A DNA stretch of 64,000 nucleotides from Podarcis bocagei (Eukaryota): assembly GCA_964188305.1 (NCBI GenBank), contig OZ076887.1; one strand, 5' to 3'. Both the position numbers and the translations under genes were made by a program. Positions 29,084 to 63,051 of this stretch are shown piece by piece (position 1 is the stretch's first letter; every line of letters begins with the position of its first letter). The notes under the pieces are model-generated. The model saw only the letters and a list, made by a program, of their open reading frames with translations, was not told the origin of the DNA and made no database searches.

Positions 29084-29595
29084 CAGGCAGGTTTAGGGTA
29101 GTGCGATTGGTGCAAGCATGCTGGACACTGTGCCACAACAATGCGGTAGATTGAAGCATGAGAGGTGTAAAGGTAAAGGGACCCCTGACCATTTGGTCCA
29201 GTCGTGACCGACTCTGGGGTTGCAGCGCTCATCTCGCTTTATTGGCTAAGGGAGCCGGCATACAGCTTCCGGGTCATGGGGCCAGCATGACTAAGCCGCT
29301 TCTAGCGAACCAGAGCAGTGCATGGAAATGCCGTTTACCTTCCCACCAGAGCGGTAACTATTTATCTACTTGCACTTTGACGTGCTTTCGAACTGCTAGG
29401 TGGGCAGGAGCAGGGACCGAGCAACGGGAGCTCACCCCATTGCAGGGATTCGAACCACCAACCTTCTGATTGGCAAGTCCTAGGCTCTGTGGTTTAACCC
29501 ACAGCGCCACCCGCATCCCATGAGAGGTGTAAGGGGTGCCAAATTTTAGCGTTGCACAGGGCAGCTAAAATTTGAGAGCTCAAAGTCCGCCACTG
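29084..29595 (-). mobile_element. hAT MITE, family B, interrupted by a Sauria SINE
   Basis: Ends match 11384-11533 (AAATTTGAGAG...AAAGTCCGCCACTG); flanked by GTGTAGT on both sides. Confidence 0.78.
29171..29518 (-). mobile_element. Sauria SINE
   Basis: tRNA-like head, CCTAGCAGTTCGAAAGCA core, (ACCTTT)n tail; 14-bp TSD CATGAGAGGTGTAA. Confidence 0.93.
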
Positions 29596-33680: not shown

Positions 33681-35321
33681 CTACCTTAGTGGATACAAAT
33701 GTCAAAACAGGTGGGAAGATTTTTCCCAGCCTCATTGCTCCCCATGGTGGTATATACTTTTCTTCATAGGAGCAAATGTGAGCTGTTCATTTATCAGGGG
33801 CCAAGTAAAAGAGTGTATTCAAGGACATTTTTACAGTAGGGGCTGAATCAGTCCATATCTGCAATGTAGGGGGTCATGGTAGCGAACTAACTGACAACTT
33901 CGTAGTTTGGGTTTCAACAAAATGATGTATGTGAAACACTTTGAACATTTGAAAGCACTTTCTAAATGCTTTTTATGTAAGAAACAAGAGTTGATCATTA
34001 GAGTGTTTGAGATGGTAAAAAAAAAATATGGCCGTGTTGTTTGGTTGCTGAGCAAACTAACTAGAAAGCATGAAGTATGAGCTCATAGGCTCTGTTTGCC
34101 CAGATCAAAAGAAATAAGTAAAAAGAAGAAGAAGAATAGTGAAGAAATGCTTTATTGTCTCTCAGAAAAGCTGAAAGTGCATTAAGAACCACCATTAAAA
34201 GTTTACTTACTACTTGGTTACCTTCATCTTAAAAGGCAGAGAAACTAGGGGCAGGGATGTGGGGAAAGAGGAAACTGGAATCCTGTCCCTTCTTACAGTT
34301 ATTTTGTTACCTCTTTGATATCGTAGGTGTATTTTTAAATGTGAATGCTACAGCTTTTGCCACATAAAGCTCCAAACTTTTGTCTTCTATGTACAGAGGG
34401 AAACATTTGTCAGGTGGTGGAAGAGAGTGACAGCCATTAACTTAAAGGAACACCATTTGAGTACTTTTCAATGAAAAGAAAGCCTAGCCATAGCCATTGA
34501 GCACCAAACAAAATTTCCTTTCCTTTTTCTGATACAAACTGCTAAGTTCTTCAAGGATCATAATTATTGCTTTTGGTCATAGCCATAGGGTCTTTGACCA
34601 TTCCCAGAATCTGGCCCTTTACAGCTTACCCTCCCATTCAATTAAATAGGTTTTAGAAAGTTAAGTCTGCCTGTGCGAAGATAAAAGGAAACCTCTGGTC
34701 TTTATCCTTTACTTGTTCTGCAGCCCACTCAACCAAATCCAGTTTATTAAATGCCTCAGGCAAGGGCAGTTTCTTTGGTCTTGCTGTGCCATTAAACCCC
34801 AAGAAGATCTCACCTACTGGCAACAGTGAGATCACATTTCATAGAAGGAGAGGCCCTCTGTCTTCCATACACTGCAAAGAACATAGTCAACCAACCTCAC
34901 AAACCTTGCAACATTCAGAGTCCATATTCCTAGCATAGGGTAGTTTTGTTTGGTATTGACTCAGAAACTGCTCTCAGGGAAGTGGTGCCAGTGTTCTAGA
35001 TTCCTTACTGAGCAGCCCTGGATAGAGAAAGGTGGGAGGGAAACAGAATTTCCTAGAGAAAATGACATATCTGGAACTGTAAGTAGAAAGCTGGGCTATT
35101 TCCAGTTAAAACAGGATGACTGGGAGGGTGTACATTTTGTAGCCATTAATAATGCTTTGTTACCAATAAACTCAGCTGAGCTAGAATTCTGCACATGCCC
35201 CAGAACTGCATGTGTGGTTTGTCCTTACTCTGAGCAATTAGTGTGTTATTTGTTACTTGAAGGAAGGGTGAGATACAAATCATTAATACACCACCATCAC
35301 AGTTTGTGACATTTTGTAGAA

Positions 35322-35711
35322 AAGTAAGGTAAAGGTACGTAAAGGACCCCTGGATGGTTAAGTCCAGTCAAAGGCAACTATGGGGTTGCGGCGCTCATCT
35401 AGCTTTCAGGCCAGGGGAGCTGGCGTTTGTCCACAGACAGCTTTCTGGGTCATATAGCCAACATGACTAAACCACTTCTGGCGCAACAGGACACTGTGAC
35501 GGAAACCAGAGCGCACGGAAACACTGTTTATCTTCCTGCTGCAGTGGTACCTATTTATCTACTTGCACTGGTGTGCTTTCGAACTGCTAGGTTCGCAGGA
35601 GCTGAGACAGAGCAATGGGAGCTCACCCCATCACGGGGATTTGAACTGACGACCTTCTGATTGGCAAGCCCAAGAGGCTCAGTGGTTTAGACCACAGCGT
35701 CACTTGCGTCC
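35322..35711 (-). mobile_element. Sauria SINE
   Basis: Full length; TSD CATTTTGTAGAA / CATTCTGTAGAA. Confidence 0.93.
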
Positions 35712-36343
35712 CATTCTGTAGAACCAAGCAGGCAAAAAAGGGACCAAATCTAGTTATGGTCAGAGGGGGAGCCAAAGGGTGCAAAGATTATGCATCATAA
35801 ATGCAACTCTATGAACTGGAACTCACTGTGTGTGTCTGTGTGGTTTGGTATTATCTTGTGTTATGTGCCAACCTATTCAGAGTCCACAGACTTCAGAGGG
35901 GAAATATTAGAAGTATGCTGTAAGGTGCACTGAAATGCAGGACTTGACATTCTCTTTGCAGGGAAGGGGTTCTCTTTACATTTCAGTAAATGTCAAGCCT
36001 TTATCATTTTAATATGATTGGAATCTTAATAGTGGCTTTACCTTTTCAACTTCAGCAGTGGAGTCCGACATATGTGTACAGTTTGCTTTAAAAGTAAGCT
36101 GCCTGGGGCAGGGGGTCTTGGTTCCATTTTCTTTTGTCAAACACAATATGCATGAATAGTACTGGAATCCTCCAGATAATTTGGACTACAAATCTCATCA
36201 GTCTTGCTGGTTGGGGCTGATGGAAGTTATAAACAAAACAAAAAAAACTGTGTTGGGTTTGGGAAGGCTGAAATATATAAATAGTAAAGTAGCACATACA
36301 TGGCTCTTTTAAGTAACACACTGGAATAATTTGGGGGAATGAG

Positions 36344-50601: not shown

Positions 50602-50976
50602 GGAGACACAGGTGGCGCTGTGGTCTAAACCACTGAGCCTCGTGGGCTTGCCAATCAGAAGGTCAGCAGTTCGAATCCCTGCAATGGGGTGAGCTCCCGT
50701 TGCTCTGTCCCAGCTTCTGCCAACCTAGCAGTTTGAAAGCATGCTGGTGCGAGTAGATAAATAGGTACTGCTGTGGCAGGAATATAAACGGCATTTCCGT
50801 GCCCTCTGGTTTCTTTCACGGTGTTCCGTTGTGCCAGAAGCGGTTTAGTCATGACCCGGAAAGCTGTCTGTGGACAAACGCCGGCTCCCTCAGCCTGAAA
50901 GTGAGATAAGCGCCGCAACCCCATAGTCGCCTTTGACTGGACTTAACCATCCAGTGGTCCTTTACCTTTTTAACCT
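50602..50976 (+). mobile_element. Sauria SINE
   Basis: 12-bp TSD TACAATGAATGT; same subfamily as the 35.3 kb and 60.2 kb copies. Confidence 0.93.
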
Positions 50977-51395
50977 TACAATGAATGTATATGTCAGAAT
51001 GCCAGGATAAAAGAGAAAGGGAAGAGAGCCATGTATACCACCTCCAGGTGCTCAGAGGAAAAGGTGAGATAAAAATGAAATAATCAATATAATAAATCTC
51101 CCTAGAATCTGATCAATTGCCAAGGGAATTTTTTGACAACTTACATGACAGTTCCTCTAATTTCTCAAAACTCTTAGCAGTCAGCAATGCTTGTCTTAAT
51201 CCTGTATAGTACGTCAAATTATCTGCATACTGCAAATAGGAGGCCAAGGCAGAGAAAAAGTAGCCTAACCAATGCTGCCTAATGTGTTTATGACAGAGGT
51301 GAGATAAAAGTTTAAACCAAGGACTTTCTGGCAAACGAAAATAGAAATTAAGAATGGCAGTTTGAGTTCTTATTCTGAAAATCATATAACTAGTA

Positions 51396-57770: not shown

Positions 57771-58896
57771 TGCAGAGTTTATTTCTGCACTCTATTTCTG
57801 CAGAGTGGGAAGTTTGCAATATTTGCAATAGCCCCTTGGACTACAGGACTGGGTCTTCAGTCTGGTTATAAATCTGTGCCTGGGCTCTGCAAGTTCAGGT
57901 GGAAGGTCTGGGGGAGGTTTCACAGTTTTAAAAGCTCCCTGATGCATTCAGGGATCATTCCCCAATGGCAAGGAGTGGGGAGTTTATGTACAGCAGGTTA
58001 CGTTCTTCAGAACTTCCAAGAGATGGAGCAAGGGATACAGTGATGAGAGTGGGAGAAACAACTTTGGTCCTGCTCTGTCCCTAACACAATGCTAATCGTG
58101 CAATATAATAATGCCTGAATAGTGTTAGAGTTTGCCCATTAGTCTGAGCATTTCATTTTGAGCATGATGATTCTGCTTGCATTCCTGCTTCTGTTTCCAC
58201 ACTGCTGCCTCAGATCTTGCATAACATTGACTACTGTGCGCCTGCCTCTAGCCCCTCTGTTTTGTGTGGCAGACTATATATTTTCTCATGTTGCAAATCT
58301 ACCCCCAACACAAACACTTAAAGCTTTCCGACTTTTCTGAAAATAAAGATGCTTCTGAAGATTATCAATATCCTTTATGAACTTACATTTTTTTGCATAT
58401 AAAATCTCCCAAATAATGTCCCTCCAGAAGCAATTTTTCCTTCCAGATCATAAAAGGGAATTTGAAAAATGCATCCATACATGACTTGTGAATCTTCATT
58501 CCAACAATAAGCAGCATATGACTCCTATTCAAAGCTTGTTTCATGCACAGAAGAGCCAGAATTCTTGATAAAGTCTTGTTACATGGATGTAAGTTTCAGT
58601 AACATTAGCAAGTTCTAGTACTAATGAGCTGCTAAAGGAATAATAAGTTCGGTAAGCTGTGTTTGTTGCAGCTAATGAGGGTAGAGAGGTCTGACTTTTG
58701 AGGGAAGTTGCAGTAATTGACTTAAAAATAGTAGAATTGTCCCTGTGGTTAGTTTGACAGAGGCAAAAGTTCCTTCCTATTTCTATCATTTTAAAAAATG
58801 TTTGTACTTTATTATGTGCATGATCTGACTCTTTCTGAAGTTATGGGTTCTTAGTTGCATTAGGAGATTTTGATTGGGAGTAATGGTACCAGGAAT

Positions 58897-59257
58897 GGGA
58901 CGTGGGTGGCGCTGTGGGTAAAATCTCAGTGCCTAGGGCTTGCCGATCGCATGGTCGGCGGTTCGAATCCCCGCGGCAGGGTGAGCTCCCGTCTTTCGGT
59001 CCCAGCTCCTGCCCACCTAGCAGTTCGAAAGCACCCTTAAGTGCAAGTAGATAAATAGGTACCGCTTTATAGCAGGAAGGTAAACGGTGTTTCTGTGTGC
59101 TGCGCTGGTGCTGGCTTGCCAGAGCAGCTTCGTCACGCTGGCCACGTGACCCGGAAGTGTCTCCGGACAACACTGGCCCCCGGCCTCTTAAGTGAGATGG
59201 GCGCACAACCCTAGAGTCGGACACGACTGGCCCGTACGGGCAGGGGTACCTTTACCT
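58897..59257 (+). mobile_element. Young Sauria SINE (CpG-rich)
   Basis: 14-bp TSD TAATGGTACCAGGA; ACCTTT tail. Confidence 0.94.
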
Positions 59258-59418: not shown

Positions 59419-60170
59419 GTGATGTTCAAAGTTCTTACTCAGGAGAAGCCAGCTGGAAAACCCACAGAAGTTACTATGTTTTTAGAAACTTGTGAAACCA
59501 TGATACTTCTGTTTGAAGAGAGAGCTGTAAAGTTGCCAAGAGTCTTGTAATTCAGCTTGCATGTTTCCAATCACAGAAAGACTAACATTTCTTTTTCCTT
59601 TGCCTTATGTCAATCAGTCATTTGGGATAAATTTTAGAGGCATTATGCAGGAGGTACAAACACATACCCTCTTGTCTCTTAACCAAATTTAAGTGCATAC
59701 CTCCCAAGAATCACTTTGAAATATTACTCTCAATTTAGCTCGTTGCTGCAGGTGTCAAGCAACAAATTTCAGATCCCGCTTGTGCTGACATTTGCTCTCG
59801 GGGAGAAGGAAATTAGATTTCTACTAGTCTGAAACCAGAAACAAATGTTAGAACTGAGAGCAGTTTGTTTGAGCTTCAAGTTATAAGATTAAAAAAATAA
59901 TAATGAAGGCAATTTTAGAAGCCTTTACCTTTGCATGCAGGGAAAGTGAAACCAATTATTTCATTTCGAAACTAGCTGGTTAATAAAAGTAAGTGTATTT
60001 CAAACAATAGGCTTAAGATTCGTGGAAGAAACCCAGTTTCTGCTTAACCTATTAGCATATTTACAGTAGGGAAAATGGACAGGAGATTGGATGTGTGCCC
60101 AATAATGCATACAAAATAAATAACGATAATGAGTCATTTGTAAAATCTAAGCTTTCATAAATGACTAGTG

Positions 60171-60600
60171 AAAAAAGTAAAGGACCCCTGGATGGTTAAG
60201 TACAGTCAAAGGCGATTTTGGGGTTCCGGTGCTCATCTTGCTTTCAGGCCAAGGGAGCCGGTGTTTGTCCACAGACAGCTTTCCAGGTCATGTGGCCAGC
60301 ATGACTAAACTGCTTCTGGCGCAACGGAACACCGTGACGGAAACAAGAGCACATGGAAACACTGTTTGCCTTCCTGATGCAGCGGTACCTATTTATCTGC
60401 TTGCACTGGCATGCTTTCGAACTGCTAGGTTGGCAGGAGCTGGAACAGAGCAACAGGAGCTTACCCCGTCACGGGGATTCAAACTGCCGACCTTCTGATC
60501 GGCAAGCCCAAGAGGCTTAGAGACCACAGAGTCCCATTTTGTAGAACCAAGCAGGGAAAAAAAGGGACCAAATCTACCTACTACAGCGCCACCCACTCCC
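60171..60600 (-). mobile_element. Sauria SINE with rearranged 5' end
   Basis: Same subfamily as 35322-35711; foreign 46-bp segment at 60531-60576. Confidence 0.9.
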
Positions 60601-60730
60601 CTCCGAACTAGTATTTGCAGTATATCCATGTATGACTAGCATATGCAGCTATCAATAACACAGTTGTAATCAGACACTTGTAATCAGAAAGTGTGCCACT
60701 TGTGATCTCTGTGGATGGAAGACAGCTATG

Positions 60731-61186
60731 CAGCGGCGTAGCGTGAGTTGTCAGCACCTGGGGCAACGCAAGTAATTTGCGCCCCCTAACCCGGGGCAAG
60801 GCAAGTAATTTGCGCCCCCCCTAACCCCTAACCTGCGAGTTGCCGCTGGCGCTGCCACCCAAACGACGCCGCTTGCCCGGAGGAGGAGGGGGGCAGAGAG
60901 GCGAGGAAAATGCAACGGCCCAGCAGCTGCAGCAGCAGCAGCGGCGGAGGCGGGGCTGTGAGGAGGGGCTGCCTGGTGCGTCCTCCGCGGCGAGCGCTGA
61001 GAGCCGCTGCCTGCCGGGCGCCTTCAGCCCGGACGCGCGCACAGCTCGTCGGTTCCGCGAGACATGCGGCTCCGCTACAGCTTGCGCCCGAGGCTCTTCG
61101 GCGACTCCGGAGGCAGCGAGCGCGCCCCCCCAGATGTTGTGCCCGGTGCGGCCGGCACCCCTGGCACCCCCCACGCTACGCCACTG
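60731..61186. mobile_element. Young GC-rich non-autonomous hAT element
   Basis: 15-bp TIR CAGCGGCGTAGCGTG / CACGCTACGCCACTG (1 mismatch); perfect 8-bp TSD CAGCTATG. Confidence 0.93.
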
Positions 61187-63051
61187 CAGCTATGTGTTTC
61201 TGTGGTTCTCTGTGGCTTGGTTTTTGGAGATGTAGCATGCCTAAGTGTGTGTGTGTGTGTTTGTGTGTGTGCAAGACTGAAAAATATTCAGTGGAATAAA
61301 GAGCCTGCCCTGCCATCCTCTCCTTGCCCATCTGCACAGGCAGCTGAGATCATTAGCACGGTATAGATGCTTTGGGAATTATTCTGTTCTCCTGAGGCTA
61401 TTAGTGACTGCTGTATGCTAGTCATTTCTAAAGCCTCAGCCTCATCTTAAAAGGTTTGCTTTAGTATGCATAATATTCTGCTTGCAATCCACTGCCCTTT
61501 CTTTCTGCAGTGCTCTTGGTCTCACACCATGCTTGGCCCTGTATAGATAAATAGTACCGTCCTCCTCCTGCAAGTGCAAGGATTTAAATGTTGCCTCTTA
61601 TCCCTGCAGCAGTCTGCCTAGGTAGAAAATTCAGTAGAATGCACTGCATAATATAGGCATTGTTTTTCCTGCAGAAGTTGTAATTAGTCCCCAGCCACAG
61701 TCAGGGTGCAGACATTTACAAAGAACATGAATAACAAATCTTTCAACAGTCTTTAACTGTCAGAAGAAGACTTGCCTGTACTTTTCGGACAAATGTTTTA
61801 TGTCTGGTGCCAGACAATAAACAGGATTTGCTGGCCCTCACACCAGAAAAGTAACTATAGATGCCTCCTTAGGGACTCTGCAATAAAGGAGGCTATGGCA
61901 AGCAAGTACATTTTCTGTTTCTGTCCACAAGGTTTTACTGCAGAGCCCTAATTGGAGCAGAAATTGGCCTTAAATAACAGAGGTATGAGAAATGCTGACC
62001 TTTCCCCATTTATCTATGAGCTTGGCTTATGCTTTCCCTAGCTTTCAGGGATATTGTATTTGCTGCTGGCAAACCGTGTTTTGCATCCGTGTTATTTCTG
62101 TATCTGACATCGTATTGATATCCATGCTCCATAGGTTAGCCATTTATATATCTGTATGAGAATATATCTTGGGTAATGTAACCTTGGGCTTGGCAATGTC
62201 TGATTTACCTGCTCAAATATTAGCTATGAGAAACTTTGACATCCCCTATGGGTAAAACATATCACCTCGTGTATGGTTGAATTCTGTGAAATGGCTGGGC
62301 AAGGGACCTCTTCTTGTCACCTGCATGACACTTCCTGCATGGAGAAGCAACATGCCATAAGCACAGAGCAGTGGTAACTCCCCGACCACAGTACCTGCAG
62401 TCTCCAGGTGCAGCTTCTCTTTGTAGCACACTGCCATCTCACCTTGGTTTTTTGAAAAGTTGAAACACTGAATTACATGAGCCCTCACGGGAGAAGGTGC
62501 AACATTTAACTTTCCTGTGGCTGCAATCAGCACAGTAGGTCAAAGAATGTAGTGGAGGGTGTGCAAATTTGGACCTAGCTGGTTCAAGTTAGGCTCAGTG
62601 TTCAGAGAAGCTCTCTGGCTAACTTTGAAGAAAAATCCAACTTTGAATCAAACTTGAGGCACAAGATACACTGATAAATGTAGTAGAATATTCACAACAC
62701 ACTTGTACATTGAATAGAGAAGACAACTTCAGCAGCAAACAATGCTTACTGTGACATCAGTCATTTCCTACAAAGAAGTTCTTCCCTTGACTTCCTGTAC
62801 CTGCCCCACAGAAATTCAGTGCCAGGGCCCCCAGTCTCGATCCTATTATGTGGGCAGGCAGGGGGTGCTTTACTCCTTTACCATAGGTAAAGTGGTAAGT
62901 GTAGGTCAGATTCAATTTTTTACTTAACTGTCAAGATCTTTCTGAGCAGTCTGGGTCCAGTTGCTCTCAGACCAAAGCTGCTTGCTCTCAGACCAAAGCA
63001 GCCGAGGCACAAGCACACCACATAGACCCCTGTGCCCTTCACACAAATATA

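Follow-up and report, generated by a model that had tools for sequence, protein, structure and literature searches.

The SINE copies of the window

The window, by which we mean the whole 64,000-nucleotide stretch of DNA that was analysed (its 140 N left unaltered), contains five copies of one repeat of ~390 nt:

29167-29521, minus strand: repeat copy s29
35322-35711, minus strand: s35, a full-length Sauria-type SINE and the donor of the patch (alignments, family read depth, tail type)
50605-50979, plus strand: repeat copy s50
58893-59186, plus strand: repeat copy s59
60170-60606, minus strand: s60, the whole repeat copy including the patch and 5 extra nt

What kind of element is this? Read in the sense orientation, the copies have a G-rich head with an A-box-like and a B-box-like motif, visible in their consensus as TGGCGCTGTGG and GTTCGAATCC, respectively, and they end in CCTTTAC-type units. 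ARAGORN found no tRNA and Rfam no match over the window, and it is the visible box motifs that point to a tRNA-like head. The 3' ends of s35, s50 and s29 on the sense strand are CCTTTAC-type repeats; that of s60 is CCTTTAC followed by a run of T, without the extra tail units that s35 has. The target-site duplications (TSDs) measure 12 nt for s35, 9 nt for s50, ~11 nt for s29 and 6 nt for s60. Sauria SINEs have an (ACCTTT)n terminus and depend on Bov-B for their mobilisation; they occur in great abundance in lacertids such as Podarcis muralis, and very high copy numbers have been reported for Podarcis and other lizards (PMC13295347). A very high copy number of the SINE body is evident in the four public runs aligned to the locus and, having an (ACCTTT)n-type tail and TSDs as well, the window copies appear to fit the Sauria SINE. 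In their family length, tail and TSDs, s35 and s60 resemble the products of Sauria SINE / Bov-B LINE retrotransposition. Unlike the family, however, s60 holds in its head a patch of ~56 nt that is foreign to it and unique in the genome, and unlike a typical Sauria SINE it has a short TSD (6 nt) and 5 extra nt at its 5' junction.

The first-pass annotation had assigned the 35 kb and 60 kb SINEs to one subfamily in one orientation. The alignment bears this out: both lie on the minus strand, and s35 is the closest relative of s60 within the window (86.5% identity, vs 81.6% to s50). The raw reads of run X23 offer a separate observation on the family. Hundreds of them join ~60319-60321 to ~60410-60412, skipping ~90 nt (e.g., 659 + 657 reads for 60321 to 60412). 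These reads come from other family copies, and an abundant Sauria SINE subfamily in the X23 organism lacks or replaces the central segment.

On the window s35 lies with its tail to the left and its head to the right, and is framed by the following features:

35310-35321: tail-side (3') TSD copy of s35, cattttgtagaa, the unmutated state (sequence; 12/12 match to 60535-60546)
35712-35723: head-side (5') TSD copy of s35, cattctgtagaa, with C at 35716 (sequence)
35724-35752: unique upstream flank of s35 copied to 60 kb, 29 nt (alignment; low read depth)

The first base of the 35712-35723 TSD copy is ambiguous with the SINE head. The head itself carries private mutations, among them G-to-A changes at 35690-35711 in the A-box-like motif (TGACGC vs TGGCGC in other copies); given these changes, transcription of s35 by Pol III today seems unlikely.

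Anatomy of the 60 kb SINE

The 60 kb locus is made up as follows:

60164-60169: TSD ACTAGT of s60, tail side (sequence)
60170-60530, minus strand: tail, body and inner head remnant of s60 (sequence, alignment to s35)
60531-60576, minus strand: tract copied from s35, namely 5 bases of its head, its TSD and 29-30 nt of its unique flank (alignment, two-copy depth, spanning contig)
60577-60582: 6-nt filler, cctact, at a non-homologous junction (sequence)
60583-60601, minus strand: outer, original 19-nt 5' head of s60 (matches the heads of other copies)
60602-60606: 5 extra nt, tccga, between the outer head and the TSD (sequence)
60607-60612: TSD ACTAGT of s60, head side; outer head, patch and body are enclosed as one unit (sequence)

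The order in the SINE sense can be read off directly: TSD, 5 nt, 19-nt head, 6-nt filler, copied flank, inner head with two deletions, body, tail and TSD. Central to this arrangement is the match of 60531-60576 to 35708-35752, which the first-pass annotation had described with 2 substitutions and 1 indel and which blastn-short over the 64-kb window returns in just that form (43/46 identities, 93.5%, E 4e-12 within this window). The single indel sits in a homopolymer, a run of G/A. A third copy of the 46-mer is absent from the 64-kb window, the other blastn-short matches to either query being chance 10-12-mers. The tract had been called the last bases of the 35.3 kb SINE plus flank. The coordinates are right, but s35 is on the minus strand, which makes these bases its 5' head and the flank its upstream flank. 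The copied piece thus comes from the 5' side of s35 and runs from the first 5 bases of the head through the 12-nt TSD into 29 nt of unique flank upstream, in the same orientation as in s35 and in register with the alignment of the two SINEs. Within it the TSD copy at 60535-60546 reads cattttgtagaa, like the left copy of s35 at 35310-35321 (12/12 identity). Homology between the two loci ends at 35752.

How is the rest of the head arranged around this tract? A single base, 60530, separates it from the inner head, which resumes from 60529 downwards at CTGTGGTCT. Beyond the filler lies a second SINE 5' end, as had been claimed: 60583-60601 is the reverse complement of the 19-nt SINE head and has matching counterparts in the copies at about 58902, 29501 and 50611. 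In the SINE sense this outer head ends in CTGT, and by those 4 nt it overlaps the inner head. The two small deletions described beside the copy are also there. One, of 6 nt (AAACCA in s35), lies near 60521/60522 and is flanked by CT microhomology; the other, of 8-9 nt, lies at 60529/60530, where the s35 head has a GACGC direct repeat on either side. Apart from the patch and these two deletions, the whole s35/s60 alignment is free of indels; all three fall within ~30 nt of each other, whereas the body from 60517 to ~60183 has 41 mismatches and 0 gaps in 335 columns. A template was sought for the filler cctact and none was found, the 6 nt being too short to place. The patch at 60531-60582 has no TSD or tail of its own and is flanked only by the 4-nt CTGT overlap; the sole TSD pair of the locus encloses the whole SINE.

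A longer TSD (60156-60168 vs 60627-60639, 11/13) was considered and rejected, since the similarity does not stop at the SINE but resumes beyond it, which means that the target already held a ~28-bp tandem duplication with the SINE in its first unit. This pre-existing duplication (60156-60169 with 60607-60654; ~18/22 by eye over its first 22 columns) mimics the longer TSD. Further to the right, word depth jumps to 1e4-4e5 from 60724 on, where a high-copy repeat starts that extends to about 61186. At 60757-60825 there are two tandem copies of a ~35-nt unit (ggggcaa.gcaagtaatttgcgccccc.taacc), just upstream of a stretch of 71% G+C at 60800-61199.

The patch in public reads

Is the tract part of a repeat, and is the junction real? 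Four public runs were aligned to 60100-60800 at 90% likeness. One of them, X13 (organism E), has zero coverage over the patch and is uninformative; the other three gave the following depths (contig word depth for X1 and X14):

X1 (organism A): SINE body 1e5-1e6; 60532-60579, 19.4 and 18.2 (contigs 9.86 + 10); single-copy flank 9.86-13.9
X14 (organism F): SINE body 1e5-1e6 or more; 60532-60579, 121.5 and 98.7 (contigs 60.5 + 60.9); flank 57.7-60.5
X23 (raw reads): SINE body, thousands of reads; 60532-60579, about 2 reads; flank, 1-2 reads

The depth of two contigs places the tract at about two copies, outside any SINE subfamily or other repeat. Since the 46-nt tract is approximately two-copy in three organisms, the donor is specifically the 35 kb locus. 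In each of the two contig runs the second contig stops near 60571-60576, where homology to the 35 kb locus ends, and this contig is most likely the 35 kb locus cross-mapping. The idea that the 45-mer might be a common repeat or part of a SINE consensus, put forward with the original description as a way in which it could fail, is refuted, as far as the low coverage allows, by a count of about two copies per genome.

The junction is likewise directly observed. Record 8 of X1, a contig of 1251 nt from organism A, spans 60493-60730 with 2 mismatches and 1 gap, including 38 letters to the left of the junction, so the junction recurs in a separate sample that bears a different organism label, and an assembly chimera at 60.5 kb, the other failure that had been envisaged, is refuted as well. 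Over the 200 columns of 60531-60730, record 24 of X14 (organism F) has 17 differences from the window. The presence of the patch in this contig means that it predates a split of ~8.5% divergence, and hence is old. In organisms A and F the G/A run differs by one base each from the window version, which suggests that the original copy may have been closer to s35 than 43/46. An allele of the 60 kb SINE from before the patch was not seen: the patch is in organisms A and F, and no joint among those listed skips 60531-60582. Both contigs cease to match the window at 60730, yet by their record coordinates run on for another 1014 (X1 record 8) and 67 letters (X14 record 24); the element from 60731 onward may be absent or different here in organisms A and F.

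Origin of the patch

Which way did the sequence travel? The TSD partner on the far side of s35, at 35310, makes the flank native to 35 kb, so that copying ran from 35 kb to 60 kb, and rules out the reverse direction. No alternative TSD that could serve was found beyond 35752. The copy starts with gtccc, which fits the filled 35 kb site at 5/5 positions vs 3/5 for the reconstructed empty site (gtgac), and it begins exactly at the s35 head/flank boundary; together these indicate that the filled site was the template and that SINE homology guided the event. As the first reading of the locus had it, the TSD states are cattttgtagaa on the left of s35, cattctgtagaa on its right and cattttgtagaa at 60 kb. 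Because the T at 60539 agrees with the left TSD, the simplest reading is that the mutation to C at 35716 arose only after the copying. Two other routes were rejected. A nested insertion into an older SINE would leave a remainder of that SINE, and there is none beyond the tail, while the TSD encloses the outer head. Segmental duplication does not apply either, as similarity ends at the SINE tail and at 35752/60576.

The explanation that we favour, with a probability of roughly 0.65, is that the 60 kb patch arose by aborted synthesis-dependent strand annealing (SDSA) finished by end joining (SDSA+EJ): a break in the head of s60 invaded s35, repair copied into the unique flank, and the break was sealed by end joining. 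Such an outcome is also called a templated insertion, an overshooting ectopic gene conversion or an aborted SDSA closed by end joining. In this scheme a normal full-length Sauria SINE would have inserted at 60 kb with the TSD ACTAGT, and a later break would have opened its 5' head after about position 19 (SINE sense). The body-side 3' end (window plus strand) would then pair with the same-subfamily SINE 25 kb away and be extended through the s35 head, the TSD and ~29 nt of unique upstream flank (41 nt beyond the head), with two slips at short direct repeats during synthesis giving the 9- and 6-nt deletions. Finally, the strand would leave its template and be joined without homology, by 6 filler bases, to the end bearing the original 19-nt head. 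The break, and the order of SINE first and patch later, are what we infer; the anatomy speaks for them in several ways. One in-register homologous junction together with one non-homologous junction with filler is the signature of SDSA+EJ. The original head kept outside the patch, the CTGT overlap and the TSD around everything fit an intact SINE that was later broken. The microhomology-flanked deletions clustered at the junction are explained as well, if repair synthesis is slippage-prone. The proposal of repair by invasion of the 35 kb SINE is therefore the better supported of the two readings first offered. One detail of it has to be given up: the strand was said to return after copying, but a return by homology is not seen, the retained head being joined at the far side through 6 nt of filler and without homology. 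Against repair, the two deletions are not required by SDSA and could be later, unrelated mutations, and the 12% divergence of s35 and s60 today would hamper Rad51-type pairing unless the two were much closer then.

Could the flank instead have travelled to 60 kb in an RNA? By 5' transduction, an RNA of the s35 locus started at least 40 nt upstream would have been reverse-transcribed by the Bov-B machinery and, with a template jump, inserted at 60 kb; the reverse transcriptase would add a few bases and then switch to a different SINE RNA, of which it would copy the first 19 nt. We consider this unlikely, if less so than the other alternatives. It has in its favour that the flank adjoins the SINE just as it does at the 35 kb source, that one TSD pair encloses the composite and that s35 is the closest relative of s60 in the window. 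However, the flank is internal, with the 6-nt filler, the 19-nt head and 5 nt between it and the TSD, so that the internal template jump is required as a second rare event; and the tails differ, s60 being without the extra units of s35. The transcript would also have to initiate upstream of a Pol III element. Transcripts of Pol III SINEs normally start at the head.

Does sequence divergence separate the two readings? Against 2-3 differences in 45 columns for the flank copy stands a body divergence of 12.2% overall (9.7% outside CpG). The difference is not significant (Fisher p 0.14-0.78), which agrees with transduction, although the test has no power to tell a whole-element copy from a patch. 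A high-identity conversion tract beside the junction was sought in the s60 body and none was found, with 4-9 mismatches per 50 columns throughout. Flat body identity is expected under SDSA, in which synthesis starts at the break, and equally under retrotransposition; the missing tract is thus neutral for SDSA and lends it no positive support. Derived states (outgroups s29 and s59) are common to s35 and s60 at 4 positions, vs 2 for s60 and s50 and 1 for s35 and s50, as transduction would have it; but CpG decay accounts for three of these, and the remaining one is in the copied head. Of the differences between s60 and the family majority, moreover, the 19 best supported include only 3 at which s35 has the s60 state; each of these varies within the family (11-40%) and is a subfamily marker also present in s50.

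The distance between the loci bears on the choice too. Ectopic repair favours nearby donors, so a donor 25 kb away in cis would favour repair over a random retrotransposed landing. With approximately random integration, a daughter copy would land within 25 kb of its source at a rate of ~4e-5 per event. This argument is weakened by ascertainment, as such pairs are noticeable only inside one 64-kb window; taken as relative numbers of detectable events, proximity would still put repair ahead by orders of magnitude, provided that such chimeric transductions are not very common. The first-pass annotation had held that either of its readings records cis contact between the repeats, which is wrong for retrotransposition, as it requires none. 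Taken in full, as a Bov-B retrocopy of an upstream-initiated s35 transcript that jumped onto a second SINE RNA and landed near its source, hinting at local reinsertion, the transduction account seems quite improbable. If true, the composite would be a 5' transduction with a template jump by a Pol III Sauria SINE, and not a repair scar.

Two further mechanisms were weighed. A FoSTeS/MMBIR-type event, in which a stalled or collapsed fork in the s60 head switched to s35, copied ~60 nt and switched back with no two-ended break, predicts an anatomy identical to that of SDSA+EJ and expects cis proximity equally. The short microhomologies CT, GACGC and CTGT at the deletions and head overlap suit it, but the return junction has a 6-nt filler and not microhomology. 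On sequence alone the event is inseparable from SDSA+EJ; we regard it as quite improbable. Capture of RNA or cDNA, whereby a break in the s60 head was patched with a reverse-transcribed local transcript crossing the 5' junction of s35, would agree with a short patch (about 56 nt) and one non-homologous junction, and the literature describes insertions templated by RNA. DNA pairing accounts more simply for the in-register homologous junction, however, and this capture is very unlikely. An artefact (an assembly chimera at 60.5 kb) or a common repeat is scarcely credible in view of the spanning contig of X1, the contig from the ~8.5% diverged organism F over 60531-60730, and depths at 60532-60579 of 19 (X1) and 121 (X14) against 1e5-1e6 on the body, or of ~2 against thousands in X23.

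How does the favoured explanation, repair templated by s35, relate to known systems? Short templated insertions at the joints of aborted SDSA finished by end joining are well documented (PMC2895639). Long-tract conversion is documented too, as is the copying of sequence without homology from an ectopic donor (Nassif 1994 and Richardson 1998, as cited in PMC4888836). As in P-element gap repair in Drosophila and long-tract gene conversion in mammalian cells, an ectopic homologous template would have been invaded, synthesis continued beyond the homology and the product end-joined; in those systems the sealing is by non-homologous or alternative end joining and often leaves short insertions. Unlike SDSA+EJ at induced breaks with an engineered donor, this is a natural, fixed, multi-species germline event whose break is deduced, and the repeats are dispersed SINEs, 12% diverged and 25 kb apart. 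The nearest parallels on the retrotransposition side differ in other respects. Upstream transduction by L1 and SVA and U6-L1-type template-switch chimeras are known forms of 5' transduction and chimeric retrocopy. They resemble the 60 kb locus in that the source's upstream flank is joined to a copy of the element elsewhere. In s60, in contrast, the flank is internal and not terminal, the element is a Pol III SINE and the source is only 25 kb away.

The s60 patch is most likely a clean, naturally occurring example of a repair outcome already known, and the kind of system is not new. Being one case, it exemplifies a familiar mechanism and leaves our understanding unchanged. Ectopic repair between dispersed repeats usually leaves no visible trace, since a converted stretch resembles any other copy of the repeat; the overshoot into unique flank makes donor, acceptor, polarity and junction types readable at one locus. 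A genome-wide search for patches of flank within repeats could measure the use of SINEs as repair templates and its decay with donor distance.
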